A stretch of DNA of 64,000 nucleotides from Glycera tridactyla (GCA_965644265.1 OZ286462.1:7068001-7132000); one strand, 5' to 3'; shown: positions 1,788 to 45,745, counted from the stretch's first letter. The notes: a model not told the origin generated them from the letters alone. Numbers and translations: made by a program.

Positions 1788-1879
1788 CTGCATCTTGCCC
1801 TCCTGGTAGGCTGGCCAACTACACGAATACAACATCGGACGTTTTGTCGCATTTAGCCACATACTCATGGCCGGATAAG
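1788..1879 (-). CDS. NAGA: Alternative specificity exon D (alpha-NAGAL type: AYPAMSMWLNATKRPMLYSCSWPAYQEGKMQ)
   Basis: Acceptor TTTTACGCAG, donor CAG|GTAATG, 92 nt, phase 1 to 0. CSWPAY matches human NAGA. The downstream exons are not in the window. Confidence 0.9.
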
Positions 1880-2011
1880 CTGCGTAAAATAGAACATCAA
1901 CATCACTAAGAACGTGGAAGTCACACACAACACAAAAAAAAGATAAGTCTTGGAGGGGCCACATCCAACTGCTGAAAGAAAAGGCTTAAAAGGTAGGTCC
2001 ATCCGGGTACA

Positions 2012-3334
2012 CAGGGCATGACATTAGGGTTTTCGGCTGGTCGCGCGAGCGGACAAGTGACATAAGATATTTGGTTATCCGCCCAAGAATTTTACCTGTC
2101 CAATGTAATATTAAGCATACAGTCGAACCTCCCTATAACGACCACCCTCGGTCGCACGCCAGAGTGGTCGTTATTGGGAGGTGGCCGCTATAGAGAAGTT
2201 CTGATGAAAAATGCAATCACACATGTCTGTGGACGCCAAGTGACAGCTGACAAGTATACCAACTTCACAATTCCGCCTCCAAGCAAAGATGAACCCGATC
2301 TCGCAATTATCAATAAATATCATCAAATCGATGTGTGTCAGTTGTAGTCACCTATAATACATCCGAATTTGACGAAATATTGACATGATCGTCAAAAACG
2401 TGATGAATTCGTTCATTGTGCGCAAAGAGCGAGACCATGGCGGCCATTACTGTAAACATCATAAAGAACCAAAATACCCGGATGTACGAACAAAACTCGT
2501 GTTATTCACATTTTTTCGAACAAGAAGGTGATTTTAGTGGTTCTAGAAGGTGATCTTTCGAGCTGTAAAATTGGTTTGAAGAAATATGAAGAAATTTCAT
2601 TTGAAAGTAAAAACGTTAACGATTTGCGAGCAGCAAGCAAGTGAGCAAGCCGAATCTGAGCAGATTTCACGGTGTCGAGTTTGATCGGGAGGTCGCTGGA
2701 GGGTGGAGACCGGCCGCTGCTAGCGTGTAGGCAGGGGAAGTGAGTTCATCTGAGCGGCAAGCAAGCGGAATCTGAGCAGATTTCACGGTCTTGAGTACGG
2801 CCGGGTGGTCGCTGGAGGAGGGAGACCGTCCGCTGCTAGCTGCTTGGCGGGGAAAGTGAGTTCATCTGAGGGGCGAGCAAGCGGAATCTGAGCAGATTTC
2901 ACGGTCTCGGGTACAGCCGGGTGGTCGCTGGAGGAGGGAGACCGTCCGCTGCTAGCTGCTTGGCGGGGAAAGTGAGTTCATCTGAGGGGCGAGCAAGCGG
3001 AATCTGAGCACATTTCACGGTCTCGAGTTTGGCCGGGAGACCGCGAGTGGTCGTTATCAGGAGGTCCTCGAACCAAACATGGCGGTCGCTGGTCGGAGGT
3101 TGGAGGTGGTCGCTATATGGAAGACAATTATAGTGAAAAATACGTTGGTCGCGGTCATAGGCGGTCGTTATAAGGAGGTGGTCGCCCTCTGGAGGTGGTC
3201 GTTAAAGGGGTTCGACTGTACTTTAAGAAGAAAACTGCAGTTGTCCAGCGGGCAAGCTGCTTATATAATTCACTTGTCCGCCATGAATTTCTACTTGTCC
3301 CGGAAAACCAGACAACCCTTAATGTCAAGCCCTG
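2012..3334. mobile_element. hAT-like MITE (TIR CAGGGC(A/T)TGACATTA) interrupted by the 2120-3218 element
   Basis: Inverted termini CAGGGCATGACATTAGGGTT / AACCCTTAATGTCAAGCCCTG. The TSD is not clean. Confidence 0.55.
2120..3218. mobile_element. Non-autonomous Tc1/mariner-pogo-like element (TIR CAGTCGAACC, TA TSD) with internal ~116-bp tandem repeats
   Basis: TA|CAGTCGAACC ... GGTTCGACTG|TA. About four 116-bp units at 2640-3040. Confidence 0.85.
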
Positions 3335-4557
3335 GATACATCTAATCAAGCTATGTTGATCTTGACTCAATGACTTTTGGGATGAAATCAAAGAAAAGAC
3401 TGCCATATTCACAGAGTGAGGAATGGCCTCCTGCATTCATGGACATGGTATTGCACATGCAGACAAAATAGGTTCAGTAAAATTTCCAGGATATATTTTG
3501 ATATACTCTCAAAATATCTGATTTTAGGTGTTTAGACCGATACCAGCTGATTTTCGATTTCGATTTCGATTTTTGTTTTGAATCTTTAGAATTCAGGAAA
3601 TAGTTGAAAGGGGAGGCATCACTATATAGAGAGCTGATCTGTGCAGGTGATGTAGGCTCCTAAATGATTCCTTATAGAAAAAAATCTGCGATCATACGAT
3701 CTTTTCCATAATTGCTTTCAAAAGATGCACAACATGAGCCATTCAAGTGCATATTTTACTGCCAGTCAGGGCTATCGATGTGAGATCAAAGCATTGCTGT
3801 AATTTCAGATATATCTCTTTCTTTTGACTACATACACAATACACATGTACATGGGCTCAGGTTGCTCATGATCCTCAATGAATATGTAACATGCTTTCCC
3901 TAAGTACAGGGGATGAAAGCAAGAATCCATCCCCATGATCAGTTGAGCTTAGTCGACTCACATCTATCATGTGTTACATGCCAGCAACACGAGGTCACAA
4001 GGTCAGCGATGTTGTGACCAAGCGTACATACTCGACTGGTTTAGCATGTAATATCCTGACCAACACTTAGACAACACTTAAGTGAAATTGTCATCAATGA
4101 ATGAACTGACACTCATCTGATTTCTTGTGGATTTGAACCTGGATCTCCGGGGCATGGCACCAACTACCTAGCCTGTGAAGAAGCAAGCGGTCTTGGGCGC
4201 TGAGCTATGCAGATGATTTCTGAGAATGTAATTTGTACATTCCAATGGTGTATCGTGAACCATAGTTTCATTCTAACCAATTCCTAACAAATTTCACAAA
4301 CTGATCTGCCTGCTTGTGCCATTAGGGCCTTTGCTCAGAGCCTAGATATCTAGCTTTGATAGCTTTTAGAGAAGCATCTTAGGTGCAGTCTCTGATTTTC
4401 AACTCAAACTTCGAGTGGCCAGCTGGTCTTTCTCAAACGATTACTGAAATCATGTGATTAATCCGACCTTCAACAAGAGGCAAGGGATGGGTTCTTTAAC
4501 TAATGACAAAAAAGCAAAGAGTAATACACAAAAGGCAGGAAACAAACTCGTACAAAC

Positions 4558-4652
4558 CGTATATCCTTTCACGAGCTGATGAAGAGGATATTCACACGAG
4601 AAGTACATATCTCGGCCAGTCTTGTTCAGATAGAATGCAAATGGTGGGTAAC
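4558..4652 (-). CDS. NAGA: Alternative specificity exon C (alpha-GAL type: GYPPFAFYLNKTGRDMYFSCEYPLHQLVKGYT)
   Basis: Acceptor TTGTAG, donor ACG|GTTTGT, 95 nt, phase 1 to 0, intact. Close paralogue of exon B. Confidence 0.8.
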
Positions 4653-6534
4653 CTACAAGTTCAAGTCAGGCCAGCTAGCACTCAGTGGGAAAATACCCTC
4701 AAAATATCAATGAAACGAGGTACAAATAAGATTGGTCAATGGTCAGCCCGGCAGCTAAGATGAGGACGTAATGAACAATGTTGATAATCCTGGGGCTGTA
4801 CATGAGGTTTGCTAGGGTAGGATGGTTGAGTATAATGATAGAAAGAAGAGCGGGGTGTACACTAGTCATGAACAAGCAACGCCGATGTTCTTCCCTGAGT
4901 GAAACGCCCAAAGCTGCTCTCTGGATATAACCCTATAACCAGGGATGTGCTTGGCTCACAACCAAAAACCCTGAAAACCTGACCGGAGGCACATTTCACC
5001 ATGACTTTGCACACCAAGAAACCCCACAACTGCTGATTAATGGCTACTATAACTCCATGTGAACTCTGTGCTCTATCTCCACTAATACTGGTCCCATTTT
5101 CATGATATAAAACCCCCAAAAAAAAGCATAAAATGCTTTTCTCTGTCATATGCATGGATTGCTGGATTTGTTATCAAAAACCTGGAAATCCGTGGAAATA
5201 TTACATCCCTGTATAACATGGTATCTTCAAAGATCACATGGCACCAAGAGCAAACCCACCACATGGGGTTATTATTATCTACTTTCTGAGTTTGATATCT
5301 CTGCGTGGAATACATAGTAAAATCACATTTGACAATACAAGAAGCAATGAACAAAAACTCATGGAGTCCTGACACAATAATAAACAGCTCCACGTGTTCT
5401 GGTCCACAGTATCAAGAGTGAAGAATTTTATGAATAGCTCCTGTGACCCTGACCTTTAACCTATGATCACATGCCTCAAGGGGAAGGTGTCCAACCATTG
5501 CATTATTTCAGTTTGGCCTCCTGTAGCCTTTACCTTAGCCCTTTGGGCACAGAAATCAAATTTCAAAATACAATTTTTATATAGATGAAAGTTTGAAAGT
5601 TTTTTGAAAATTTGACCATCCAATCCAAGGTTAATGCTGAGGAACTGATAGAAACATCACTCAAAAGGACACAGAGGACACAGAGGTTAATGAAATATGT
5701 GCAGATGGACATACAAACAAACTTAACAACATGGTTTAAAATGGTGAGCAGGGCTGCACCTTGACAGGGTGACCAAAATGTGTAAAAGGTTCACCACAGA
5801 ACACCAGACCTGCACCATGAGAGATCCACGGGATCTGCACACCTGACAGAGGAGATGTGTCTCTGTGGAGATGACCTCTGAACTTCACCTCTCAAATCAC
5901 CCAGATGGGAGCGATACATGACTTTAGACAGTGAAAGTGACTGTGATGTGCTTAGCCCATGCAGTCAATCCGGTGTTTGTGGTTGAATACTCCTCGGGGA
6001 GATGAGAAAGGCTCAGATCTGAAAAAGCCTGCCAAGGAATGTAATTGTAAAGTCAGGAGAATATGTTGAAAATGCCTGACTGTGAAGTACTATATTTACA
6101 TCTTTTGATGTGCGCACCACTATTAGGGTGATATGGATGTACTGGACTTGCCGATTCAGAGATACATTCAATGTCAGAAGCTGCATGGGTAGGTAATAAA
6201 AGCACCGGCAATTTCAAAGTTCATGACATTTTGATATACCAGGATATGGCTTGCCATCTTTGCCACACTTAGCAAATAATCTTTTTTTTCTTCTCAACTT
6301 CAGGTTTGGTCAAATTATATTCAAGAGGTTTTGATCATATTGTTTGTTCATGAGCACATTTGTTCACCTGAACAATTATCCTTGTAGGCAGTTAGTTGCT
6401 TCAGAAAGAAAGAGGATATATACATGTATAGGAAAACATATTGCCTGGTCAGAATGACAGGTGGTCCTAGTGTGATGGTAATCATGCAAAGCAAAGAGTA
6501 AAACGCAGCAAGCAGGAGCCGAACTCATACAAAC

Positions 6535-6629
6535 CGAATGTCCTTTTGAATGCTGATGCAGAGGATATTCACACGAGAAGAACATATCTCGGCCAGTAAT
6601 GTTCAGATAGAATGCAAAGGGAGGGTAAC
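6535..6629 (-). CDS. NAGA: Alternative specificity exon B (alpha-GAL type: GYPPFAFYLNITGRDMFFSCEYPLHQHSKGHS)
   Basis: Acceptor TTGTAG, donor TCG|GTTTGT, 95 nt, phase 1 to 0, intact. Confidence 0.8.
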
Positions 6630-8466
6630 CTACAAGTTGAGGTCAGGTCAGGTCAGGAAACCCTATTCTCAAATGGACATCCTTGAAATTTCATATGGTA
6701 GATAATAAATGCCCTGTTTTCTTGAAAATTAGTTTAATATGCTAGTGGTGTCACGATTATCAGGTATATTCCATTACCGATCAATCTTGGTGGCCAAATA
6801 GACAAACGTTTGCAGAAATATGGAATCAATTTATTCAGAAGATAGTCAGCACATATATTTCGATGGAAAATCCTGCCTTTTTGATGAAAAAAGCTATGGA
6901 TTTCCTGTGAAGTCAAAATGCTGCCATCTTACTTTGCCAATAACAAACCCTACACCCTAGGAGATTGCTCTGCATACACTTGTCTATATGAATGATTCTG
7001 GAGAGAAAACACTTGGGAAACCGGGTAGTGATTGTGATGCCAGTGTTGCAAACCAATAATAATTGATTATCAATCAGTTGGGCTAACCAATAATCGATCC
7101 TGAAAATGCATTCAATTGTCAACACTATGGTGTGTCTTTTTGGTCAACCCATTTCAAGATCTGTTAAAACTCTCGTTTAGGCGACAAAATTATGTAGTGA
7201 TATGATAATTTGAGTCTGTTTAATATGCTAGTACACTCATTCTTGCTTGAAGCCGGACAGAGATGATGTAAGCATAAACAAGCTGATGTCAACCGAGTAA
7301 AGTCATCATGTTTGTGGTCAATATTTCCCTCAAATATTACCATGAAATATACATTCTGGGTCAATATACACGGGTTTGGCACCATTACCCAACACCCGAC
7401 TCTATTTATCCACTTTCAGAGAGGCTGGGATACGTTTTTGTTTTTATTTATTTGAGGTTTAACGGCTTGTATCAACACTAGGGTTATGTATGTCATGTGT
7501 TCCTGGTTAATGAAAGCTAGATGTTCTCTCCTCTGCAGACATCGCTCTCACAAACCCTGAACACAAGCTGATGGGGAACCTGAAAGCTTGTCAAGTGGAA
7601 GTAGCTGAAAGTTCAGACCCACCTCTACCTACTCTACAAGAAACATATAAGACCTGAGGATGGCATATCTAACTATGTGAGTGGCTGGAAGTGGAGAATG
7701 CTGGGATATGTGAACTCCATCATCAATATCACTTTATCTCAGTGATGTCAGTCTGGTATGAGTTGCATAGTGTCCAAATGACTACAGGTGAAAAAAGCTA
7801 TGGATTTCCTGCCATCTTGCTTTGCCAAAAACAAGCCCCATACCCTAGGAGACTGCTCTGCATACACCTGCGTATATGAATGATTCTGGAGAGAAATGAC
7901 TACAGGCGATTTCATGCATCATCAGGAGAGTGAGGGGATCAACAAAGGCTACCCATCAAAAGTTACCCGGGATAGAGGAATGCCAAGGGGAATATATCAA
8001 AGGCAAATGATCACTCAGATGCAGAGATAAGCTGCTTCAAGGAAAGTTCACTCGACAAAATTTGGGACGGTTGCATCCAAGAGTTTGAGGAGACGGGGAC
8101 ATTTCTTGGCAACATCTTCCAATGACAGTTCACTTAATGACCTGATGATGGGCCCACGCTCAAAAAAATATGTCAAATGCCCCATGCTCCCCTCTGGATG
8201 CAACCATGTAACATGGTATCGTTGAGGCACCAAGCGCAAACCCACTACATAGGCTTATTATCATCTACATTCTGGGTTTGATATCTCTGCAGGGTATACA
8301 TAATAAAATCACATTTGACAGCACAAGGAGCGATGAACAGGAATTCATGAAGTCATGACACAATAACTAACAATTCCACATGTTCTGGTCCACAGTATCA
8401 AGGGTGAAGAATTTTCCATGAGCCAAATCCAAGTACACTGCGCCACCCTCCAGTCAATGTACCAAC

Positions 8467-8564
8467 CTGGTGTTTGCCTGTTTTAGGCTGATACAGGGGG
8501 TATTCACAGCCAAGGAAAATAGGACGCCCCGTACGATTCAGGTAAAATGAAAGTGGAGGATAAC
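8467..8564 (-). CDS. NAGA: Alternative specificity exon A (alpha-GAL type: GYPPLSFYLNRTGRPIFLGCEYPLYQPKTGKHQ)
   Basis: Acceptor TTTTAG, donor CAG|GTTGGT, 98 nt, phase 1 to 0, no stops. N-x-T sequon and C-E-x-P-L-Y motif present. Confidence 0.85.
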
Positions 8565-9426
8565 CTAAAAGACAGTGACACAATGTAATGTCAAACATCC
8601 ACAATTGCCTGATATGTGACTTAGGGTTGTTCCAATGTAAAGTGGAGGATGGGGGGTCCTGACCGGAACCTCGTCAGATATTGAAGGGAGGGTGGTATTT
8701 GGACCCTGTTGAAGACAGTAGTGAAGAGCTATAATCAGTTCCACCAGTAAGAGTAAAAATTTAAGAATGAAGCTATTTAGATATTCTTGAATTAGGGGAC
8801 AAAGGTGCCAACTTATATTATTGAATTCAAATTCCGGGGTGGGGTGAGATTTTTCCACTCCCCCTTTCCACAGTAGAATTGTCCTTAGTCATTTCTGTGA
8901 TTCAGGGGTGAAAATATTCTGCCATTGCTCAAGATCCACTACTGCACTTGATTTGTCAAAGAGTAAGGCTCACTCTGCCACCCGATGCTTTTTGCTTCAA
9001 TAGTCGGAGCTTGACTCACTAATAACTGATTCATTCGACACTTCGCATTTGTTGATAATACACATTTGGAAATGCATCTCACTTCAACATCTCTTTGGGA
9101 CTAGACAGAATACAGTCGAACCTCTCTATAAAGACAGCCTATATAGGAAGGTGGTCTTTGTAGAGTTCATTTACTGTTGAAAATACTACTGCGGTCACAG
9201 CTTAGGGTGGCCTTTATAGAGAGGTGGAATTTATGGAGAGGTGGTCTTTAGAGCAGGTCTGACTGCACTTCAGTATGGATTAAACATGTTGAGGAGGTCA
9301 TGTAGGCATGTTTGCAATGCAAAGGCCAGAAGAAGTTTTATCGTATTTTAAGAAAATCTCATTATACTGAGTAGATACAAAGCATAGCGTGCGTTATGAA
9401 TCAAATTCATGTAAAAAGACACTCAC

Positions 9427-9601
9427 CATCATCGAACTGGCTGGGTTCTGAGTAGCAACCGTCGAGTTTGACATAGTCGACACCCCATTCAGCAAAAGTT
9501 TCGGCATCCATCTGCAGGTAGTACTCACTGCCGGGGTAACCGCCGCATGTGTGTGTGCCGAAATCCTCATAGATGCCAAACTTCAGTCCCTTGCTATGTA
9601 C
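9427..9601 (-). CDS. NAGA: NAGA/GLA-family exon containing the catalytic nucleophile (YVKLDGCY)
   Basis: [58 protein letters not shown]. Acceptor GACAG, donor G|GTGAGT, 175 nt, ends in phase 1. Confidence 0.95.
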
Positions 9602-10293: not shown

Positions 10294-10468
10294 ATAATCA
10301 GCGAGTGCTTTGATTCCATTTGGGAAGCGTTGAGGGTCGGGCTGAAGACGTCGGTTCTCATCTCGCTCCTTCGCCAACCAGCAATCGTCGATGATAACGT
10401 ACTCGTACCCAGCCTCCTTGAAACCATCAGCAGCCATGCGGTCTGCATGGTCCTTGATCAACTTCTCA
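10294..10468 (-). CDS. NAGA: NAGA/GLA-family exon ([11 protein letters not shown]...YVIIDDCW...ADY)
   Basis: Acceptor CACAG, donor TAT|GTGAGT, 175 nt. Contains the GH27 IDDCW motif and is in frame with both flanking exons. Confidence 0.95.
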
Positions 10469-14591: not shown

Positions 14592-14749
14592 GCGATGCAG
14601 TTGTCCGGGTCATTGGCGCAGTCGATATTGCAGCGGAATCGTTCCCAGGTCAGCCAGCCCATGGGTGGCGTCAATCCAAGCCCATTGTCCAGACTCAGTA
14701 CTGGACAAGCTGCTATGGACAGCAATGCAACGAGCGCCCACATTTTCAT
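14592..14749 (-). CDS. NAGA: GH27 alpha-N-acetylgalactosaminidase/alpha-galactosidase, first coding exon (signal peptide + [13 protein letters not shown])
   Basis: Translates to [52 protein letters not shown], the GH27 N-terminus. Acceptor TTTTCAG ends at 14756 and the donor is GC|GTAAGT at 14591. Phase 2 matches the next exon. Confidence 0.95.
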
Positions 14750-24729: not shown

Positions 24730-27555
24730 TAAGGTTTTAGACTTGTTCTTGGAACGCAGTTTTGCAGAGTTATTACGAGAACTTAAAGTCGTAAAGATCT
24801 GGGTGGTTGACCCAGTCCTTCCTTAGGCGCATGCTGTATCCTCTGACAGGGCATTCCATTCTCTGATCACCTGAAGTGCCTGATGATACAGAACAAGAGG
24901 GCAACATTGATGATGAGGGTGAGGAGGATGGTTCGCTTGAGGGCCTAGATATTCACCCATCAGGAGCCGAGTCATATTTGAAAGAATCTGAGGAGGAGTT
25001 TGGTTTGCTGTCACGCACAGCCAGAACAGAACATTCAAAAAAGTTTCTATACTCCACTGCTAATGTTCAGCCTAAGAAACTCGTTTTACCAGGGGGTAAA
25101 GATGTGGCTTCTGAGTCAAAGACTGTATCCATGTTGGAGAGATTTTTGCAGTCTCAGTCAGCTCCTGTCAAAAACCAGAATATGGGGACATCCAGTTTTG
25201 AGAAATATTTCTTTAGTGTCCCTACATTTCGAGGAGAGAAACCAGATTTCGCTTTTGAACTTGATGCTCAACAGGTAGCAATTATCCAGCAATACTGGCG
25301 CCATAAAAATCCAACAAAACTCACAGCTTTCTCAGAAGAATCTAAGAAAATTCTTCGCGTTGAAGAAAATTTCTTTGATCTGACAAAAGTTCTCCAAATT
25401 GATGAATTCATCAGATTTGTTAATTCTGATAAGGGGACAGTAACAAAAGAGGGTATGCACAGTGCTATGTGGTCGAACTGGGAAGCTGATCTGCGTCGAG
25501 TACACACGGGGGCAAGGATAGGCACAGTTGTTCACGGTTACTCAATAGAGTTTGCTCAGATTCCAAATTTCAACAGAATCAGATACACAAAAGTGCAAAA
25601 CGAAGCTGCAAGAGAGTTAATGCACACAGGAATTCAAAATCTGTTGAGAAGAAAGGCAGTAGAAAGAGTACAGCCAAGCATGTGTTTGGACGGGTATTTC
25701 AGTACACTCTTTCTAGTGCCAAAGAGAAATTCCTCCCAGATGTGTCCAGTGATAAACCTAAATCCTTTGGATCAGTTTGTGGTAAAAAGGCATTTCAAAA
25801 TGGATCATTTGGCGGTGGTACTAAAAGCTGTGAGTCCCGGAGATCGGGCAGTGACAATAGCCTTGACAGATGCATATCTATATATGCCCATCAGACCGGC
25901 CCACAGAAAATATTTCAGATTCGCACTGAACGGAAAAATCTTTCAGTTCAGGGCTCTACTGTTTGGTCCAACCGGAGCTCCTCGGGTGTTTACAAAGGTA
26001 GTGGGAGCAGTGGTTCAACACTTCCATCAATAAGGGGTGAAAATATTGAAATATCTGGACGAATGGCTCATCTACGGCCCAGATCCAGTGTCAGTGCTAA
26101 AAATGAAGGATATAACAGTGCACCTGATAACAAGTCTGGGGTTTCTTCCGAATTGGAAGGAATCAGAACTCAATCCCACACAGCGCATCCAATGTATTGG
26201 AGAGAATCTTCAATTAGATCAGGGACGAGCAATGGTCCCAATTGACAGATTTTGTCATCTGTCAGATCTAATCGAAACATTGATTCAGAAGTCTCTGGTG
26301 ACTGCTTACGATATTCTCAGGTTGTTGGGGAAAATGGCAGCAGCAATACAGGTAGTGCCATTTGGGCGCCTTCGAATGAGGCCAATACAGATTTTTCTGT
26401 CATATCAATGGAGGCCTCAAAAATAGTCCATATGGACGCAAATTCCATTAGACCCATTGGTTGTTCCCCACATAAGATGGTGGCAAAAGAAAGAGAATGT
26501 TCTCAAAGGAGTATCACTGAATATTTCAGGCCCATCAGATATGATTGTGACATGTGATGCATCCAATCAGGGATCCCAATCAGTGCAAGGGACCTGGTCC
26601 AATCAAGAGAAAATGTGGCACATCAATGTGAAGGAGATGGGGCTGTGCTTTGGACTCTGAGACGATTCCATACTCAGATTCAGAATCATATGATTCTGAA
26701 ACGATCAGACAATATGGGAGTAGTAAGATATCTGAACCGCCAGGGGGGAACACGCTCTCCAACTCTGTGTGTGAAGACTTAGGAAGCTTTCCAGTTAGTG
26801 ATAGGCCTGAATTGCTTGATCATGGCAGCAGGACGCTTGAACCAGTGGGCAGATTGCCTGTCCAGAAGGAAGGTCCTTCCAACAGAATGGTCTCTGAACA
26901 GGGAAGTGGTGATGCAAATATTTCACTGGTTCGATTGTCCATTGATAGATCTGTTTGCATCAGCTTGGAACCACCAGTTACCAACATATTGTGCAAGGAG
27001 CAGGGACCCGGGAGCCTGGAACCTAGATGCTCTATCTGTGGCCTGGGACAGAATGTTTGCATATGCATACCCTCCAATATGTCTGGTGCCGAAAGTGCTA
27101 CAGAGGGTACAATTGTTCGAAACAGTGGTGATACTAATTACACCTTTTTGGCCGCAGAGATCGTGGTTTCCACTACTGCTCAGTCTCCTAGTAGATGTTC
27201 CATTGATTCTACCAGAGGGGGCAGACCTTCTGTCTCAGCCACAGGGCAAGTTCTCCCACCCAGACCCCGGTCTGTTCCATCTCACAGCATGGAAGGTGTC
27301 AGCCATTCCTTCAATGAGAGGATTCTTGAGAGAACTCACTCTTTGGTGGAAGCAGCCAGAAGGGAAGGTACAAGGAAAGTTTATTCCAGCAAATTCAAGA
27401 AATGTGTTGATTGGTGTGACAGATGGAATAAACATCCCAGGCATACAACTGTAGAAGATCTAGCTGATTTTCTGAGTGATTTACATGATGAAGGCCTTGC
27501 TTATAATACTATTTGCGGGTATCGGTCTATGCTTTCTTCCCATCATCCACCAGTT
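24730..27555 (+). mobile_element. DIRS-type retrotransposon A, left part (gag remnant, RT, RNase H, methyltransferase-like domain, YR N-terminus), degenerate
   Basis: RT motifs FLVPKRNSSQMCPVINL, YFRFALNG..QFRALLFG and YLDE; RNase H TCDASNQG and HINVKE; MT-like DLFAS...YAYPP. Contains a stop at 26031 and frameshifts. The left boundary is approximate. Confidence 0.9.
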
Positions 27556-28942
27556 TGAAGGGTGGTTTTTGGGCACACCTTCTAGGCCAGACAAAACTCT
27601 TGTATGAAATACATACTACACTTTAATGACAGGACACAAGTCCACAGTCAGTGCAGGGATAGCTCCTGATGGAGATGTTGTCAGGTTGAAGACCAAAGAG
27701 CGAAGACAATGGGTGAGCAGCGTCACCCAGTTTAGTCAATCAGCCAGGCCACATCAGAGCATCAGCAAACTACACATGCATGTTCCATGGCATGGAAATA
27801 TCAACAGCTTAACTATAACTTCATATGGTTACAAAGATGTTCAACAACAAAGCAGATGCAAAAAGGGATGTTAAATGAAATGACATCAATAATCAAGGAT
27901 GTATAGGATGAGTAGAGTAAGAAAACATACAGTATGAATTAACAATATAAAGGTATTTATCAAGGGTGGTATGGATAGAATAGGGAGAATTCCATATGGT
28001 AGGAACATGACTGCATGAGCAAGGTTGGAGGAGTTGGAGGTGGGGATAGGGGTGGGGGTGGTCATGGGCAATTATCAGTCAGGTACAGAGCTAAAGAAAG
28101 GCTAGAGTGGTAAGTTTTCATGGACAATAAGGGGATGTCAAACAATGGGTTGTAAACATGGCTGTTGAGTCCGCCATAATGCAACTTATGCAAGAGTGGA
28201 TACATTTGGAGTGGAGGAGAACACAACAGAGCAGAATTGACTTTTAACAGGGACTTCCTGGTTGTAGTCCACGTGGTGGGAAACATGTATGTTGTACATG
28301 TATATGTATGAGACTGACTGACTGAAACACAGGCTAGGCCTATCTCATTTTTCCATTGACAGACAGACAGACACACAGACAGACAGACATACAGACAGAC
28401 ACACATACTGTAGGATGGGAGTGATTGGTTGGTGGCCGGTAACTGGCTGGTAAATTGATTGATTGCTTGATGGTGGATGATGGATGACTAGATTGATTGA
28501 TTGATGACTTGACTGGTGGATTGATTGGTGGTGAAGGATGATGACTGGATTGATTGATGGTGAAGGATGATTGACTTGACTGATTGATGGTGGATGACTT
28601 GAGTGATCATAGGTGATGGATCTCTTGATTGATTTATGAATTTATCATTATATTATATGACTGTTGAAGGGATGGATGAATGACTTGATTGATAGACGAA
28701 TGCGATTGGATATATTGGGTATAGCTGATGGATGAATTCATTGATTGATGGATAAGTTGATTGATTGATTGATTGGCAAATGATATTGGTTGATAAATGG
28801 TAGATGACTTGATTGATTGATGGATGAATGAGTTGCATGATGACTTGCTGGATGATAGATAGTGATCAGGGTAGATGATATAATTGGCTGTGAAACGAAT
28901 GAATAGTTGTTGGGATAGACACACGTCAAAAATACGATTACA
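27556..28942 (-). repeat. 3' LTR (1387 bp)
   Basis: Direct repeat of 44359-45745, about a dozen substitutions by eye; rich in GATT/GACA microsatellite. Confidence 0.92.
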
Positions 28943-30529: not shown

Positions 30530-33474
30530 TTAATCTCCAGGGACAGACTTCTTAAGCAGCACTTTCAGGCCCTTGAGAGTATTTGATGCCCGAATATCAG
30601 GGGTAGATCTGTTCCAATACTGTACACCTCGAACACAAAAGTTGTCATCACAGAAGTGTAGTCGGGTCTTAGGCCTGACAAGTAGCTTTTTCTGTGAGAG
30701 TGAGCTGCTGTACCGTGTAGGAGCACCGCTCAGTCGTGCGGTCGCAAAGTTAAACAAACAATGTTATTACTATTGAGATATCGAAAAACTTCAATAATTG
30801 TATTGGCACGTCTGGTATCTTTAAGACAGGGTATTCCAAGGTTGGCATGGAGGTCAGTGGCGGAGTAATTCCAGCCGCTCTCACATATGGCACTTAAACA
30901 GCGGTTTTGCGCCACCTGGAGCCTAGATGATAAAGAGTTGGAGCAAGAATCGTAAACATAATCAAGATAAGTGAAGAGGGGATCGATCAAATTCTTATAG
31001 AGAAAAAGTGCCGTGTCCTTATTGATTGATGGGCGAAGATGATATAGGGCTCTTCTTCTGAAATTCACTTTTCTGAGTAGATATTCAATGTGGTGTTTAA
31101 ACGTAAGGGCCGGGTCAAGCTGAACACCAAGATATTTGTACTTGTCCACCTGAGTTACATGCTGGTCACCATATCTGATGTGCAGCTGCCTACATCTTAG
31201 GAGGCGTTGCTCTGTACCAAATAACATAGCATTAGACTTACTAATATTGAGTGTGAGCTTTCTGGCTCTGAACCATTTGGATATATGAACAAGGTCCAGA
31301 TTTAGTTTTGATTCTATATCATCTACGCTCTTCCCAGAGACAAGTAAGGCCGTGTCATCTGCATACAAGAATGGGGATGAAAATTCTAAACAATCACTGA
31401 TATTGTTAACATAAAGGATGAACAACAAAGGACCTAAGATGGAGCCTTGTGGGACCCCGTAGCTAATTCTTAATTCAGATGAGATTGTGTTGCCAATTCT
31501 GGTAGACTGAGTTCTGTCAGAGAGATAAGAGGAGATCCAGGCTAAACTTGAGGTACCAAAGCCAATACGTTCCAGTTCCTTGACAAGCAAGATATGGTCC
31601 ACGGTATCGAACGCTTTCTTCAGGTCCAGGAAGAGGACGCCACCAACATGTCCCCTGTCCGCCCCCTGGTAGATCCTATCCAGGAGGCTGACAAGGCACG
31701 TGCCAGTGGAGAAACCCTTCCTGAACCCGAATTGAGCAGGGTTTAACAGATTGTGGGAATTTACATAAGTTGTGATTTGCTCATGAGCAACTTTCTCCAT
31801 AAGTTTGTCCAGAATGGGCAAGAGAGATATCGGCCTAAAGTTACCAAAGTCACTAGTTGTTCCACTCTTGTGAATCACTGTGACGAGAGCACGCTTCCAT
31901 GCCAACGGAAAAGTATTGGACTGGATTGACAAGTGATAAATATGGGCAAGGATGGGACTAATAACTTGGGCAGAAATCTTTGGAAAATAGCTGGTGATTT
32001 CATCTAAGCCTGAGGATGAGGAACTGCTTAAATCAAGTATATACTTCACAATGTCATGTCGTGAGACGTCAGATAATACGAATTGACGTTCTGGTGCAAA
32101 AAGGACTTCCTGGTTGGTACATTCAGTATCCTCGACTGGTTCAATGAGATCAGCTAGTTTGGCGCCTATCTCGGTAAAATATTTGTTTACTGCTTCCGCC
32201 ACTGGGGTATGAGTTGAATCTTCAACATCAGGGGGAAAAGTAGGCAAGACAGGAGCTTTCTGAGTAAGTGGCCAGAAGCGTTTGAGCTCCTTCCATAATC
32301 TTTTGCTGTCATTGCATGCATCTTTCAAACAATTTGAGATATAAGATCTCTTGAGCTTCTTTTTCAAGCGATTCTCGATTCTCAGAGATTCCCTTTTCAT
32401 GGCTTTGTTGAAATCTGTAGGTTGGTCATTATTTACCTTGCTCCAAACCTCACAGTAGGCAATTGCGGCAATATATTCCGGTGTAACCCAGGGTTGGTGA
32501 TCAGTTTTACACATAACTTTCTTTTGAGGTGCATAAATATTCATGAGGGATACAAACGTGGCTGTGAAAGCATCGGCAGCAGAGTTCACATCTTCGGAGT
32601 CGAATACAGGACCCCAGTCCGAACTCTCAACATCATCAATAAAAGCATTGGGATCAAATTTCTTAAATGAGCGGAATAATATTTCATGCTTGTCAGGGGC
32701 TTTTTTTGAGCGACTACGGGCCATAAATACCAAGTGATGATCGCTGACACCTGGGTCAAGTTTGCCTGAGCGACAGTAATACTCAGGGCGGTTCACTGCT
32801 ACGTGGTCAATGCAAGTACTACTCCCTTGGGACACTCTAGTTGGGTCAGTGATGAGGTGTGTGAGGCCAAGCTTTTCACAGAAACGAGAATAGGACTTCG
32901 TTTTATGGCAATCAGTTTTCAAAATGTCAATGTTCAGATCACCGACAAGGATAACATCTGCCGGGTGTACTAAGCTGGGATCTGTTATGAGAGATTCAAG
33001 GATATCTAGGGATCTGTTTACAGAGCCATCTGGTGGTCTGTATGTGAGAAAGTAGTGGGTAGGTCTTGCTTTATATAGATGAAGTGTGAAGCATAATATT
33101 TCAACATCAGGTGTGCATTTGCATAAGGACTCATTCAGAGAAATGTCGTACTGAGACTGGTAGTAAACAAGGAGACCACCTCCACCAGTTTTACCACTAG
33201 CAGGTGTTCGGTCAAATCTATGAAAGCGATAGCCAGGTATGCAAAGCTCTTCATCACTAATGGATGGGTTCAGAAATGTTTCGCAGAGACAGAGTAGATC
33301 CAATTTACTGAGTAGAAGTAAACTTGAAATGTCATCTGATTTCCTTGTCAGGCTTTGTATGTTGATACAAGCACTGGCAATGCCAGGCAGGTTTGACAGT
33401 GCCATGGAGCAGTGCTCATGGTCACTGAATGATTCGATGAGTGGGAAGGTAAATTTATTCTTTCTCGGGGACAT
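30530..33474 (-). CDS. LINE ORF2, apurinic endonuclease + reverse transcriptase (one frameshift near 30760)
   Basis: APE motifs LCETFL, GDLNID and SDHHLV; RT motifs QFGFRKG, FLDLKKAFDTV, GVPQGSILGPLLF and YADDT. The main frame stops at 30730 and the C-terminal tail continues in another frame to 30530. Confidence 0.92.
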
Positions 33475-35619
33475 GGCAAACCTTTCACTGGTATTGAAAG
33501 AGTGGTATACAGTGACAGGAAGTTGAGCATAAAAGATAATGTGAGTAAGTATATGGGGAGAGCAACCCAAGAGGACGTAGACAGAACATTGGGACTTGAA
33601 AATACAGCATTTGAGGCCACATGCGGCTAAGCGAAAATTTGACTGCTTCGGGCTAGATGTAATTGAAGGGCGACACCTAGCAAAAAGCTGGCACAGGACA
33701 TAGGAAGGTTACAATGCTAGGGGCAGGGTGTGATTACATAGTGACAATGACCAAGCGTCATGACTGCCCTCTAGCGTGAGTTCCGGCGGTGTGCATATCA
33801 CCAAGAGTGCTTGTAATTCTTGAGAATGGAGACTGAAGTCACCATTACAGACTATTGTAAGATGGCTGAAATACCTTCAGATGGTCACTCACTTGTAGAT
33901 AGGTAGCAAAAAGACATAATTAAATGATCAAAGACAAGCCTGACAGGCAGCGGATAATGGCTCTATTGTGATATATAATGAGGTACATAGATGGTCAAAC
34001 GATTGACTGACATGCCACACTTGCATGGAAGATTCAGTTACGGATAATCATTTTGGACAATACACTGCAGTAGACATGCAAAATCACAATGATGAGGACG
34101 TAGGTTTGGCATTGTTAGGTGCAACTCCTTGACAGGAGAAGTATTCATGGCAACTTCAGTACAGGGCAAAGACATACAGCAGGGAGAGGAAACATACCAC
34201 AGGTTAATAGAGTCTGTCGAGAAAACAGGAATAATCAGAGATTTCATCTAGTTGTCCCTGGGACAATAACATGTACACAGCTTATATTGAATAGAGGCAT
34301 GATCGAAGTCATGAGAAACAATTGAATGACAATCCCTAGATCACTGAGAGGAGAGGAGTGATAATGCAAAAGAAGGCCCCAATTTATAATTGAGGGTGTG
34401 ATTGCTGGTACATTGTCGGCCCTGCAGAGACTGAGTTTACAGATCCGGATTGCTCTGTTAGATACCAGCGATTGTCATCTATTTAATTGCCTTCGACAGA
34501 GACAAGAATAGTGTGCTAGCACCAATGAAATGAATATCCCATGAGATATGCCAAGAAGCAAGAGAACAGTTACATCATTCGGATTCAAGAGACCTTGGTA
34601 GGGATGGGTGGTGTATGTAAGTGATGTGTAATAGTGGTTCAAATAGATAAGGTAGGCACCAGAAAACAGATTGGGTTGTAGCATATGCCCAAGGTAACAA
34701 GTATGTAATATATTGCAGATCTACATCAGTAAGCAGGATATCACTAGCCGAGTAATCAAAATCGTTTACCCCATATATGATAGAGACAAAGTACATAATG
34801 CATATAAATGATCGAGGGTTCGTCAGTAAGCATTCAACAAAAGAGTACATAATAGGTGAAATCAATAGACAAGTAAATGAGCAAATAGAAGAAACAGAAA
34901 TTTAGTCCGTAATATGCAGGTAAATGAATAAATAACTAAATGTGTAAATAGGTAAACAAATTAATAAATCAATGGTTGACCCGATTCCGCCATGTGTAAA
35001 TGCACCTCACAAGCTTGATACCCAGTTTTTCAGAGCTTTATCCTGGCAGACAAGGTCATGTGAGGATAGATACCAGGCAGTTAGGCATACGTGGCATACA
35101 CGGTCATGCACACATTAATTCAAACAAGCACACCATAGGCAGAAAGACACACATGATCTATGATCAAATAACAGGAATTGGTCACATGATGGAATCCAAG
35201 AGACACCAGAAAAGCACCAGATGATCTTCAATAATCACAGAACTACCCACAAGTAAGACAAATTGAGCATGTCCTAAAATTGATTGCATTGAAATAAAAA
35301 CCATATTTCTCAAAGACCTGTAGTGTAGCTAATAGATATGAGGAGTTACCGCTAGGGCGACATGTTTGACATGAATAATGAAATCAAAGTCCAAACTATC
35401 ACCTTCTTAGAGGCAATGATGGTGGCATATGTATACATATCTGGGACAGCTAGAGAGAGAAAGTGTGAGATGAAGGTGTCGGCATGTAGCTGGAGTAGTG
35501 GTAGAGGCAGCGGCCTTGGTGTGGTATGAAGGGTAGATGAAATGTCATGCGTGTGCCGCCAGAGCGCATATGTGCCTGCGAGTGTTGGTGATTTGTGAGT
35601 AAAGAATATATTGGCGTGA

Positions 35620-38520
35620 TTACTGGTGCCAAGAATTTTGTGGTACATGGGTCTGAGGGTTCTGATTCATATTGAATGATTGTTGCTGGAAGTTGCTGTT
35701 TTGCTTATTACCAGATTGCCAGGAGGGGGGAGGGGGTCTTGTTGGACAAAAACCTCCATTGAGAGGAAGTGACATGAGAGCAGGGATGAAAGGTGGGGCA
35801 TTAGGTTGAAGTAAACTGTGATTGAGTGGACGAGGAGGGGGTTGCTGAGATTGATAGAAGCTGTAGTCATTCCAATGTGGGTTCTGGTTTTGAAACTGAT
35901 TCTGGCCTTGAATTGGATTGTTAAAGGTGTAAGAGTTACTCCAATTCGGATTATGATTGTGAGATTGAAGAGGATTGGCAAGGTTAAAAGGAGGTACTGG
36001 CGGCATTTGTGGCGGTTGGTGTTCCGATGCATGCGGTACCTGCGGGGCAGGGCAGGGGGCGGGGGTGACAGGGGTGGTTGCCTGCTGAGGTAGTATATCA
36101 TGAGTTGGTTGGACCACCTGCTCATGCTCCACATTTAGTGGAGGTGCGACATTATCAGTGGCAGTGACAGGATTTCCTTCACCTGGATGGTGGGTGGGGC
36201 CATTTTCAATCTTTTTATTGACTGTTTGGAGGATTCCACTTGTTACAACCTCTGGTTGACTGCCATAACCTCTTGTTGCCCAGATGACGCCGTCGTGGGT
36301 CCAAACTTTATTGAACACTCGACTGCGTCTGGCTTCACGAGCCTGATAGAAAAGTGCATTTTGGTTTGAAATCAAATATTCCTTCACAAAAATGTGAGAC
36401 CCACGGAAGGAGCCCTTGCGTTTCATGATTGCTCTCTTTATATCAACATCTTTAAACTTAATTAGCACAGGTCGCTGGCGTCTGCCATGTCTGCCAACAA
36501 AAGAGCATTTGATCACATCCCTTTCAGAAATAGTCAAACCAGTTTTGTCATTTAATGCATAAAGAACATTTTCAGTGATGGAAAAATAGGGGTTCATGTC
36601 AACCCCTTCTACCAACAAACAATTCAATCTCTCAGACATTTCGAGATTGTCAAATCGCCCTTCCCCTCGATCAAGACGACTTTCAGTTGTTTTGATGAAA
36701 TTGTGTACCAGAGATTCAAGTTTAGTGACTTGATCAAGGATACTTTCATTCATTACCACACCTTGCTGTGTCTGGGTGCTATGTGCTTGGTTTTCGGCAA
36801 CTGCAGTGGCATTTGAGGCTGTTGCGGTGGGAGGGGCAGCAGTTTGACGATGTGGGATTGACAACGACTTGACTTCCCTCTGTAAATGGACCACTTGGTG
36901 TTCAATCTTCGCCACATCTTTTGAGATTTCAGTTACCAGACTTTCACGGATGCGTGCTTCAGCAAGGTTAGTCTCTGATTTGATCACACCAAACATATTT
37001 TCATGCAGTTCACGACGAATACCATCTTTCAGTGATGTCAAAATGTGATCAGTAATGGTGAAGTCAGCCTGAGTAGAGGCATCTAGCTGAGATTGAGATG
37101 TGTACTGGGTTGAGGCTGACACTGAACAGCCAGAAATTTGTGATAAGTTATGTTCTTGGACAGAGAATTGGCTGGGCAAGGGGCTACGAGAAGGACTGCC
37201 TTGGCCTGGTGGTATGGGAACAGAAGACTCTATGGAGAGTGATGAAGGAGAGGTAGCGTTATCTCCAATGTTGGTGTTTTCAACGAATTCCATCATCGTG
37301 TTACTAATGTCGGAAAGTGCGCCTACATCATCAGGTGATTTGCCACCCGCCATGTCAGCTTGACCAGCAGAGGTAACACTTAATTGCGTGTCCTCACTTC
37401 GGTCAACAGCTGTTGAAATGGACTCGTCGGGGCATGACAATAGCGAGGGGAGTGAAACACATGATTGCTGGTCACTCTGTGGAGGTGAAGTGGAGTTCAT
37501 ATTCAGGCGTTTGGGACTACTAGATTCAGTAGTTGAGTCAGGTGAACCCCTAGCACGTTTACGAACAGGTGTGTTGCTAGTGCCGGTAGCAGAAAGATCT
37601 GAATGTGAGATAGGCGGGTCCAATAAGTTGACATATGGGTCATCTGCCTTATTTGGTGATAGTTGTGAGAGTATAGGATGTCTCCTACGATGACGTATCG
37701 GTGTGTTGATAATCACTACACTGCCATCAGATGTATAGCCCGATAGATCTTGGGAAGATGCCGCGGCGCCGGCAGCCTCGAAAACAAAAGGGGGCGGGGC
37801 ACCATCCATGCTGGGTAATTCGGATTCTTGTAGGAAAGTGATAACTGATGGTACTTCAGTTTCAGGCATTACACTAGTTGATGGATTCACAGGATCACCA
37901 TCACGTTTGATGTGTAGGTAGTTAAATTCCAGTTTTTTGATGACAACACTAGTAGGTTTAGGTAATTTCAGATCCTCATTCTTGAGTGGGCGGAGAGGAG
38001 ACAATTGGCGTACATCATCGGGTAGTAGAGAAGTGGCATCTTCACTACATAGTGGCGGTAAAGAAGACTGAGTCACTGAGACAGTGGCAGCACTGGAGAT
38101 GTGTTCAGGGACATTGACACGTAATGGTAGGAGAGAAGAGTTAACAATTTTAACACCACTATCACTGGCGAAACTATTCTGGGCATTCTGGGCACCTAGC
38201 ACCGATCGTAAGTCATTTGTAGCAACAGTGGAGATTGAACGTTTCCTAGACAAATGCTGCAAGCCTCCATGATTAGACGAGCTTACGCGTGTCGGCGTGT
38301 GCGGGAGGCAGTCACCCGTACCCTGCTCGCTAGACTGGGGGAGGTCACAAGTGTCTCTAGGGCTTGATGTCGGTGACTGGGTAGCAACAGGGTAAACAAA
38401 CCCAATATCACCCAACGATTGTTCATTAGGGCTGGTGAAAAAGGAATTGAACGAGAGAGAATTGAGAAAGTTCCCACGACCCAACCTACGTCTCCCGGGG
38501 TTCTTGAGTATCTTATCCAT
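35620..38520 (-). CDS. LINE ORF1 (966 aa; coiled coil + RRM-like ORF1 core, long disordered arms)
   Basis: DNLEMSERLNCLLVEGV...RPVLIKFKD...IFVKEYL...VWTHDGVIW is the ORF1 core typical of CR1/L2-group LINEs. Uninterrupted ORF. Confidence 0.85.
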   Translation of the reverse strand: MDKILKNPGRRRLGRGNFLNSLSFNSFFTSPNEQSLGDIGFVYPVATQSPTSSPRDTCDLPQSSEQGTGDCLPHTPTRVSSSNHGGLQHLSRKRSISTVATNDLRSVLGAQNAQNSFASDSGVKIVNSSLLPLRVNVPEHISSAATVSVTQSSLPPLCSEDATSLLPDDVRQLSPLRPLKNEDLKLPKPTSVVIKKLEFNYLHIKRDGDPVNPSTSVMPETEVPSVITFLQESELPSMDGAPPPFVFEAAGAAASSQDLSGYTSDGSVVIINTPIRHRRRHPILSQLSPNKADDPYVNLLDPPISHSDLSATGTSNTPVRKRARGSPDSTTESSSPKRLNMNSTSPPQSDQQSCVSLPSLLSCPDESISTAVDRSEDTQLSVTSAGQADMAGGKSPDDVGALSDISNTMMEFVENTNIGDNATSPSSLSIESSVPIPPGQGSPSRSPLPSQFSVQEHNLSQISGCSVSASTQYTSQSQLDASTQADFTITDHILTSLKDGIRRELHENMFGVIKSETNLAEARIRESLVTEISKDVAKIEHQVVHLQREVKSLSIPHRQTAAPPTATASNATAVAENQAHSTQTQQGVVMNESILDQVTKLESLVHNFIKTTESRLDRGEGRFDNLEMSERLNCLLVEGVDMNPYFSITENVLYALNDKTGLTISERDVIKCSFVGRHGRRQRPVLIKFKDVDIKRAIMKRKGSFRGSHIFVKEYLISNQNALFYQAREARRSRVFNKVWTHDGVIWATRGYGSQPEVVTSGILQTVNKKIENGPTHHPGEGNPVTATDNVAPPLNVEHEQVVQPTHDILPQQATTPVTPAPCPAPQVPHASEHQPPQMPPVPPFNLANPLQSHNHNPNWSNSYTFNNPIQGQNQFQNQNPHWNDYSFYQSQQPPPRPLNHSLLQPNAPPFIPALMSLPLNGGFCPTRPPPPSWQSGNKQNSNFQQQSFNMNQNPQTHVPQNSWHQ

Positions 38521-44358: not shown

Positions 44359-45745
44359 TGAAGGGTGGTTTTTGGGCACACCTTCTAGGCAAGACAAAAC
44401 TCTTGTATGAAATACATTCTACACTTTGATGACAGGACACAAGTCCACAGTCAGTGCAGGGATAGCTCCTGATGGAGATGTTGTCAGGTTGAAGACCAAA
44501 GAGAGAAGACAATGGGTGAGCAGCGTCACCCAGTTTAGTCAATCAGCCAGGCCACATCAGAGCATCAGCAAACTACACATGCATGTTCCATGGCATGGAA
44601 ATATCAACAGCTTAACTATAACTTCATATGGTTACAAAGATGTTCAACAACAAAGCAGATGCAAAAAGGGATGTTAAATGAAATGACATCAATAATCAAG
44701 GATGTATAGGATGAGTAGAGTAAGAAAACATACAGTATGAATTAACAATATAAAGGTATTTATCAAGGGTGGTATGGATAGAATAGGGAGAATTCCATAT
44801 GGTAGGAACATGACTGCATGAGCAAGGTTGGAGGAGTTGGAGGTGGGGATAGGGGTGGGGGTGGTCATGGGCAATTATCAGTCAGGTACAGAGCTAAAGA
44901 AAGGCTAGAGTGGTAAGTTTTCATGGACAATAAGGGGATGTCAAACAATGGGTTGTAAACATGGCTGTTGAGTCCGCCATAATGCAACGTATGCAAGAGT
45001 GGATACATTTGGAGTGGAGGAGAACACAACAGAGCAGAATTGACTTTTAACAGGGACTTCCTGGTTGTAGTCCACGTGATGGGAAACATGTATGTTGTAC
45101 ATGTATATGTATGAGACTGACTGACTGAAACACAGGCTAGGCTTATCTCATTTTTCCATTGACAGACAGACAGACACACAGACAGACAGACATACAGACA
45201 GACACACATACTGTAGGATGGGAGTGATTGGTTGGTGGCCGGTAACTGGCTGGTAAATTGATTGATTGCTTGATGGTGGATGATGGATGACTAGATTGAT
45301 TGATTGATGACTTGACTGGTGGATTGATTGGTGGTGAAGGATGATGACTGGATTGATTGATGGTGAAGGATGATTGACTTGACTGATTGATGGTGGATGA
45401 CTTGAGTGATCATAGGTGATGGATCTCTTGATTGATTTATGAATTTATTATTATATTATATGACTGTTGAAGGGATGGATGAATGACTTGATTGATAGAC
45501 GAATGCGATTGGATATATTGGGTATAGCTGATGGATGAATTCATTGATTGATGGATAAGTTGATTGATTGATTGATTGGCAAATGATATTGGTTGATAAA
45601 TGGTAGATGACTTGATTGATTGATGGATGAATGAGTTGCATGATGACTTGCTGGATGATAGATAGTGATCAGGGTAGATGATATAATTGGCTGTGAAATG
45701 AATGAATAGTTGTTGGGATAGACACACGTCAAAAACATGATTACA
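44359..45745 (-). repeat. 5' LTR (1387 bp)
   Basis: Direct repeat of 27556-28942, followed on the minus strand by the PBS-like sequence. Confidence 0.92.

Follow-up and report, generated by a model that had tools for sequence, protein, structure and literature searches.

Can one gene of the GH27 family supply, through a choice among alternative exons, the two enzyme specificities for which vertebrates use two genes? The question is raised by a 64,000-nucleotide (nt) stretch of Glycera tridactyla DNA (GCA_965644265.1 OZ286462.1:7068001-7132000; hereafter, the window), whose minus strand carries the 5′ half of a GH27 gene that runs off the left end and contains, between positions 1788 and 8564, four homologous copies of its exon 4. 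A first-pass annotation, made from the sequence alone, read these copies as a mutually exclusive cassette that switches the gene between two activities, that of alpha-galactosidase (alpha-GAL) and that of alpha-N-acetylgalactosaminidase (alpha-NAGAL), and contrasted it with the two genes of vertebrates. The comparison is fair; the vertebrate Fabry and Schindler enzymes are a classic case in which gene duplication, together with two substitutions, produced a new specificity. The cassette reading is supported here by the anatomy of the locus, by arrays in related animals, and by isoform pairs in Haliotis and Patella. With a probability of roughly 0.78, the best explanation of the whole is an old exon array, spliced one copy at a time, whose choice of copy switches the specificity of the enzyme. 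The gene probably does the work of both the human Fabry gene and the human Schindler gene.

Four exon 4 copies at one position of a GH27 gene

The four copies lie in tandem on the minus strand in the order A (8467-8564), B (6535-6629), C (4558-4652) and D (1788-1879), with lengths of 98, 95, 95 and 92 nt, respectively. A reading of the minus strand agrees with the first-pass annotation in all particulars: each copy is bounded by an AG acceptor and a GT donor, runs from phase 1 to phase 0, has a length of 2 mod 3, and is free of stop codons in the used frame, while both other frames contain stops. All four fit the consensus (G/A)YP....LN.T.......C..P.., with its N-x-T sequon and its Cys. Their translations fall into the two types that had been claimed. 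Copies A to C are of the glutamate type, reading CEYPLY in copy A (peptide GYPPLSFYLNRTGRPIFLGCEYPLYQPKTGKHQ; donor GTTGGT) and CEYPLH in copies B (peptide GYPPFAFYLNITGRDMFFSCEYPLHQHSKGHS) and C (peptide GYPPFAFYLNKTGRDMYFSCEYPLHQLVKGYT), which share the donor GTTTGT; in all three a Tyr replaces a Trp, and in copies B and C a His also replaces a conserved active-site Tyr. Copy D, the last in the array, reads CSWPAY (peptide AYPAMSMWLNATKRPMLYSCSWPAYQEGKMQ; donor GTAATG) and is the ancestral serine/alanine type.

A tblastn search of the exon 4 peptides against the whole 64 kb returned exactly four sites (E 1e-5 to 1e-22) and no fifth copy, the next best match having E >0.1. Further, the window was compared by tblastn with over 300 full-length GH27 proteins from animals. 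Every one of them matches exons 1, 2 and 3 and the four exon 4 copies, and no other GH27 exon lies between the copies, as the annotation had maintained. In these searches of the 64 kb, no second copy of exons 1, 2, 3 or 5-7 was found, and protein residues beyond about 205 have no match anywhere; a relaxed search of the unmasked bases in the 1.8 kb left of copy D, where 538 nt are masked, did not find exon 5. The lack of any downstream match excludes private downstream exons for each copy within the window, and also tandem partial genes. The locus has the anatomy of a mutually exclusive cluster, with tandem homologous exons of identical phase at one position and no exons of the gene in between.

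Upstream of the array, exon 1 (14592-14749, minus strand) carries the ATG and a signal peptide, is matched by many GH27 proteins in tblastn, and ends in phase 2 at a GTAAGT donor. Exon 2 (10294-10468, minus strand; 175 nt, AG acceptor, GT donor) encodes the substrate-binding aspartates within IIDDCW, and matches the structures 1KTB and 1R46 over residues 34-94 (E 1e-20 to 1e-22). Exon 3 (9427-9601, minus strand; 175 nt, AG acceptor, GTGAGT donor) encodes YVKLDGCY, ends in phase 1, and leads into the array as a constitutive exon; exons 1, 2 and 3 joined to any single exon 4 copy remain in frame. The nucleophile Asp of GH27 (K(L/F)DGC) is present in exon 3 and the DDCW aspartates in exon 2, and sequence matches to Melibiase_2 and solved GH27 structures over the N-terminal (beta/alpha)8 barrel place the gene in the animal lysosomal alpha-GAL/alpha-NAGA clade. 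Exons 5-7, which would encode the acid/base Asp and the C-terminal beta-sandwich domain, fall outside the visible sequence. A protein search with exon 3 gave 917 matches at E <1e-10, and the named ones are alpha-GAL or NAGA. By its sequence, the window gene is a lysosomal-type GH27 gene.

The nearest full-length relative is P0384, a JGI transcript-derived protein that is 71-88% identical over exons 1-3 (88% in exon 1 and 84% in exon 3) and 80% identical in copy D; a fragment, P0002, has 81% identity in exon 3. The nearest named species by GH27 sequence are the annelids Capitella, Dimorphilus and Owenia, and the gene by itself points to a lophotrochozoan source, probably an annelid or a near relative.

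Selection on the copies

The four copies share 42-81% protein identity with each other. Copies B and C are the closest pair, at 86% nucleotide and 81% amino-acid identity, and on this evidence copy C is a recent duplicate of copy B. Their likeness falls away over the first 100 nt or so of intron on each side, and the 86% identity is confined to the exon itself; the two differ by 8 non-synonymous and 5 synonymous changes, a ratio of non-synonymous to synonymous divergence (dN/dS) of about 0.4. The older comparisons give a dN of 0.24 with a dS of about 2 for A versus B, and a dN of 0.27 with saturated dS for A versus C. Synonymous sites have turned over while the protein has been kept. Judged by these substitutions, the copies are maintained coding exons rather than relics.

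Equivalent arrays in annelids, a gastropod and a nemertean

GH27 loci from public assemblies of six species (L001-L006) were mapped in the same way as the window. The same array was found in four of them. From 5′ to 3′, the exon 4 copies read CEYPVY and CSWPAY in the annelid Capitella teleta (L002); CEWPYY, CEWPLY, CEWPNY and CSWPAY in the annelid Owenia fusiformis (L003); CEWPLY, CEWPGY and CSWPAY in the gastropod mollusc Haliotis rufescens (L001), which has a single exon 5 and no other multiplied exon; and CEWPLY and CSWPAY in the nemertean Lineus longissimus (L004). The starfish Patiria miniata (Echinodermata, L006) and the acorn worm Glandiceps talaboti (Hemichordata, L005) each have exon 4 as CSWPDY only, fused to exon 3 in Glandiceps, and no multiplied exon.

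All four arrays sit at the same intron position. Every array copy has its AG acceptor two bases before a Tyr codon, an in-frame GT donor, and a length of 2 mod 3. The serine/alanine copy is last in every array, window included, and the glutamate copies precede it. Moreover, across the five arrays from three phyla, the first specificity position is occupied by Glu or Ser only, and Ser is always accompanied by Ala.

The array is also old. When the two specificity positions are masked, window copy A agrees at 16/22 positions with the glutamate copy of Capitella and at 13/22 with its serine copy, while window copy D agrees with the serine copy at 17/22 and with the glutamate copy at 10/22; the glutamate and serine types were thus distinct before Capitella split from the window species. 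In particular, among genomic copies the CEYPVY exon of Capitella is closest to copy A, Capitella also has the CEYP motif seen in the window glutamate copies, and the AYPAM...W(L/M)N start of copy D is common to the serine copies of Capitella and Owenia. In Haliotis, the two types are closer to one another than to the annelid copies. Across phyla, these comparisons allow either one origin with later homogenisation, by co-evolution and gene conversion, or repeated duplications at the same place. Taken together, anatomy, selection and cross-phylum conservation make it likely that the copies form a mutually exclusive exon cluster.

Isoforms and transcript-derived proteins of relatives

The retrieved proteins were searched for pairs that are identical upstream of exon 4 and differ within it. 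For example, two isoforms of a Haliotis rufescens 'alpha-N-acetylgalactosaminidase-like' protein correspond to two copies of the genomic array: X1 (P0343; CSWPAY, FSCSWPAYIVGTLKKV) uses the third genomic copy and X2 (P0330; CEWPGY, FSCEWPGYQRAVGIK) uses the second, and they are 100% identical on both sides, exon 4 being the sole difference. The Patella vulgata 'alpha-galactosidase A' isoforms X2 and X3 (P0453 and P0460) are likewise identical except in exon 4. In Biomphalaria glabrata, the model P0313 and the model X3 (P0362) are identical everywhere except in exons 4 and 5, and the Lineus X1 model (P0403) carries the glutamate copy. All of these models were generated automatically for RefSeq; they count as indirect evidence of transcripts from the orthologous arrays and not from the array of the window species.

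The unusual residues of the window glutamate copies occur in expressed sequences as well. Transcript-derived full-length proteins of relatives carry CEYPLY, CEYALY or CEYALH and are 67-77% identical to copy A (P0402, P0400, P0412, P0409, P0438, P0411, P0454 and P0394, from metatranscriptomes and run assemblies), so the Tyr-for-Trp and His-for-Tyr variants are expressed somewhere.

Predicted substrate specificity of the isoforms

The proposed switch of substrate relies on a two-residue code of the human enzymes, S188/A191 in alpha-NAGAL versus E203/L206 in alpha-GAL A, whose exchange alters activity, and both the structures and the literature bear it out. The PDB sequence of human alpha-GAL A (1R46) reads CEWPLY, those of chicken and human alpha-NAGAL (1KTB and 3H53) read CSWPAY, and 3LX9 is an engineered alpha-GAL A with CSWPAY. 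The S188E/A191L exchange in alpha-NAGAL results in a gain of alpha-galactose (alpha-Gal) activity (PMC5478728, citing Tajima 2009 and Tomasic 2010).

The window copies align with this code. In phmmer searches of all PDB sequences, copy A finds human alpha-GAL A first, its CEYPLY falling on the CEWPLY of chain residues 171-176 (E203 and L206 in the precursor), and copy D finds chicken and human alpha-NAGAL first, with CSWPAY identical. Copies A to C have Glu and Leu at the human E203/L206 positions, their CEYPLY or CEYPLH aligning to 1R46 without gaps; copy D has Ser and Ala at the S188/A191 positions when aligned with 1KTB and 3H53. Glu at this position of human alpha-GAL A sterically excludes N-acetylgalactosamine (GalNAc), and the engineered 3LX9 enzyme is the converse.

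By analogy, exon 4 would encode the loop whose two residues decide whether the 2-position pocket has room for an N-acetyl group. An mRNA containing copy D would yield the ancestral alpha-NAGAL-type enzyme, with an open N-acetyl pocket, hydrolysing GalNAc and, less well, galactose (Gal). The Glu/Leu pair of copies A to C would instead fill the pocket and yield enzymes that prefer alpha-galactose and hydrolyse Gal only; B and C may differ further, their active-site Tyr being His. Overall, the human enzymes' code makes it probable that the exon switch sets the preference for alpha-Gal or alpha-GalNAc.

How one copy per transcript could be enforced

In the proposed mechanism, the spliceosome would join exon 3 to one of copies A, B, C and D, and the chosen copy would then be joined to a shared exon 5, located beyond the left edge of the window or under masked bases. 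Transcripts with no copy or with multiple copies would lose the frame and would presumably be eliminated through nonsense-mediated decay, and only single-copy mRNAs would give protein. As the first-pass annotation had pointed out, the lengths are all 2 mod 3 and the inclusion of zero, two or three copies shifts the frame. All four copies together restore it arithmetically (8 mod 3 = 2), yet the frame of the second copy contains a stop, and multiple inclusion consequently truncates the protein. The introns are 0.9-2.7 kb long, which rules out steric hindrance as the mechanism of exclusion. Exclusivity would most likely arise from frame-based nonsense-mediated decay combined with weak, competing donors on copies A to C.

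Two complementary pairs lie close to the copies. Copy A is flanked by the two arms of a 16-nt pair with 88% complementarity (8443-8458 and 8680-8695, 9-24 nt after the donor and about 120 nt before the acceptor), and a 17-nt pair (6539-6555 and 5655-5671) links the 3′ end of copy B with its downstream intron. Such pairs could loop out an exon; their number is about that expected by chance.

Points against an exon switch and alternative explanations

The exon-switch reading has to be weighed against a number of contrary observations, given in this section together with the alternatives that they favour. The gene's own product or isoforms were not found in a collection of 5.8 billion proteins by searches with the beetle homologue P0035, with two profiles built from a full-length relative plus the exon peptides of the window, or with exon 3. 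The downstream junction shared by the copies is assumed. An inverted-repeat scan for docking and selector pairing gave 14 short pairs and no common docking arm, and RNAduplex pairing of intron 3 with 400 nt of sequence upstream of copies B, C and D yielded z values of 0.2-1.0 versus shuffles, a crude comparison in which whole sequences were paired.

The array may be spliced as proposed and yet produce isoforms that differ in pH optimum, stability, glycosylation or aglycone preference, not in the choice between Gal and GalNAc. C. elegans obtains both activities from one protein (PMC548690), and in one study the S188E/A191L exchange in the human enzyme altered the alpha-Gal kcat/Km no more than about 4-5 fold (PMC5478728). 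The window copies differ at many positions besides the two specificity residues; both the Trp to Tyr change of copies A to C and the Tyr to His change of B and C are without an experimental counterpart, and the resulting activity could differ from simple alpha-Gal hydrolysis. A set of arrays with exactly two classes, Glu or Ser, at the first specificity position is, however, what would be expected if the N-acetyl pocket is what switches, and the steric effect of Glu, with its converse in 3LX9, points the same way. An alternative function for the isoforms is accordingly judged unlikely.

The other serious alternative is that only copy D is used in the window species, copies A to C being open pseudo-exons left over from an ancestral array. 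Copy D is by far the nearest to full-length relatives, at 69-83% identity versus at most 77% over shorter stretches for the others, and the protein searches above found no transcript or product of the window species. The donors of copies A to C (GTTGGT and GTTTGT) are weak, copy C also has a poor polypyrimidine tract, and the comparison of B with C comprises 13 substitutions only, which cannot show that both are still in use. Further, the CEY-type proteins of relatives cluster by exons 1-3 as a clade apart from the window gene and the serine-type relatives (support 82/86), and are probably the product of a separate glutamate-type paralogue. They show a functional sequence type and not splicing from an array, and the paralogue, which could have assumed the function, weakens the idea of a genome with no separate alpha-galactosidase gene; its existence is also consistent with an isoform turned into a separate gene. 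Against an array of relics, copies A to C all keep the frame and the AG and GT sites, along with the sequon, Cys and Glu/Leu pair, with low dN at saturated synonymous change; B and C, from a later duplication, are still intact and better conserved than their flanks; and weak donors are also found on the Haliotis and Lineus copies that RefSeq models use. We therefore consider the sole use of copy D distinctly unlikely and retain the exon switch.

Lastly, although tandem GH27 paralogues exist elsewhere (a neighbouring Patiria gene and adjacent beetle genes), an origin of the copies from separate, partly overlapping paralogues or from an assembly or haplotype artefact, both raised by the first-pass annotation, is extremely improbable, given that the 64 kb hold no second exon 1, 2, 3 or 5-7, that protein identities of 42-81% are too low for haplotypes, and that four independent assemblies have the same layout.

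Relation to known enzymes and gene arrangements

Human GLA (Fabry) and NAGA (Schindler/Kanzaki) share with the window copies the GH27 fold, the catalytic residues and the Glu/Leu versus Ser/Ala code. In humans the two states reside in two genes on different chromosomes, whereas in the window they reside in alternative exons and the rest of the protein is shared. The human genes have the same intron positions; exon 2 of GLA is also 175 nt long, equal to window exon 2, and its exon 4 is 92 nt.

The closest parallel outside GH27 is coq-2 of helminths, annelids and molluscs, likewise one gene with homologous alternative exons (6a and 6e; PMC7434440). There too, a change of two residues near the substrate redirects substrate choice, and the arrangement occurs in annelids and molluscs and not in vertebrates. 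The systems differ in that COQ-2 is a membrane prenyltransferase (ubiquinone versus rhodoquinone) with two exons of equal length, whereas the GH27 array has up to four exons of unequal lengths, all 2 mod 3. Moreover, the coq-2 switch has been proven by genetics and RNA-seq, whereas the window array is known here from its sequence. A different solution is found in gana-1 of C. elegans, where one gene is proposed to provide two activities through one dual-activity protein rather than alternative exons, and where the alpha-GAL activity is fully inhibited by GalNAc (PMC548690).

No paper describing the array was found in a full-text literature search, outside which most subscription journals lie. 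The first-pass suggestion of novelty stands to this extent; the arrangement is not unique to the window species, since it is also present in relatives and implicit in public gene models. Gastropod and nemertean RefSeq models swap the same exon at the same position with the same Glu/Ser split, and differ in copy number. They are automatic models for which no published interpretation was found, and in some loci exon 5 (three copies in Capitella, two in Lineus) or exon 3 (two copies in Owenia) is also multiplied. As far as can be told, the array is partly visible in public gene models and has remained uninterpreted.

If the exon-switch reading is correct, a soluble lysosomal hydrolase joins a short list of enzymes, COQ-2 among them, whose substrate choice is made by mutually exclusive exons, and the same two-residue code that vertebrates obtained by gene duplication would be delivered by splicing and kept in at least three phyla. 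The locus would then offer a natural experiment comparing splice isoforms with paralogues as routes to enzyme specificity. For annotation, there is a warning that single-isoform GH27 models in spiralian genomes would conceal an alpha-galactosidase. Studies aimed at enzyme replacement in Fabry disease have explored the engineering of GH27 specificity (PMC5478728), and the natural exon 4 variants, in which Glu is combined with Leu, Val, Gly, Tyr or Asn and followed by Tyr or His, would be a resource for it. A more tentative proposal, which we put forward as a possibility open to considerable doubt, is that spiralians (annelids, molluscs and nemerteans) ancestrally used one GH27 gene with an exon 4 switch, that the separate glutamate genes of some lineages are isoforms 'frozen' into paralogues once the gene had been duplicated and alternative copies lost, and that vertebrate GLA and NAGA perhaps arose alike. 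On this proposal, the additional exon 5 and exon 3 arrays of some species would constitute combinatorial active-site cassettes in a soluble enzyme.

Other observations on GH27 loci and on the window

Exon 5, which carries the acid/base Asp and the Arg of WRN, is present in three copies in Capitella (L002:4753-5598; CNLARN, CNLGRN and CNVWRN) and in two copies in Lineus longissimus (L004:4823-5681). Together with the Biomphalaria glabrata models that differ in exons 4 and 5, this points to another alternative-exon array next to the first in some species. The nucleophile exon 3 of Owenia fusiformis occurs in two tandem copies (L003:3233-4011). The exon 3 peptide appears twice in series in a model from the tapeworm Schistocephalus solidus (P0001), and this repeat looks like a duplicated alternative exon that was read through by annotation. 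Patiria miniata has a further GH27 gene (L006:6940-7762), arranged tail-to-tail with the single-exon-4 gene at a distance of about 1.2 kb, and the species may have the two forms as tandem paralogues instead of isoforms. Three long contigs of a single metagenome assembly (ENA assembly ERZ25072999) carry an intronless GH27 gene of 1218 nt; its 405-amino-acid protein, P0300, is 78-79% identical to window exon 3 and copy D.

Within the window, the intron between copies C and D contains a 116-nt tandem repeat with three or more units that are 84-86% identical (2643-3044), and a 20-32 nt motif, ACCTCCCTATAACGACCACC (2127-2182), with inverted copies at 2161, 3034, 3160 and 3194. These repeats probably belong to a repetitive element, and no link between them and splicing was established. 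A 190-nt direct repeat, 86% identical, is present just downstream of copy A (8226-8415) and in the B-C intron (5240-5429); it may be the remnant of a duplication unit or a short interspersed element.

The rest of the window is rich in transposons (24876-27558, 30733-33570, 35623-38520, 45756-46478 and 61851-63671). They include an intact open reading frame (ORF) of a long interspersed nuclear element, 946 amino acids long, with endonuclease and reverse-transcriptase domains (Pfam RVT_1, 8e-34). An ORF with a tyrosine-recombinase N-terminal SAM-like domain, scoring below Pfam's cut-off, adjoins a reverse-transcriptase-like ORF and is possibly DIRS-like. Three large ORFs (966, 607 and 240 amino acids) have no Pfam match. 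Two near-identical 114-amino-acid ORFs (28062-28406 and 44865-45209) lie 16.8 kb apart with their neighbouring sequence also repeated; a large element is their probable source, either present twice or carrying them in its terminal repeats.

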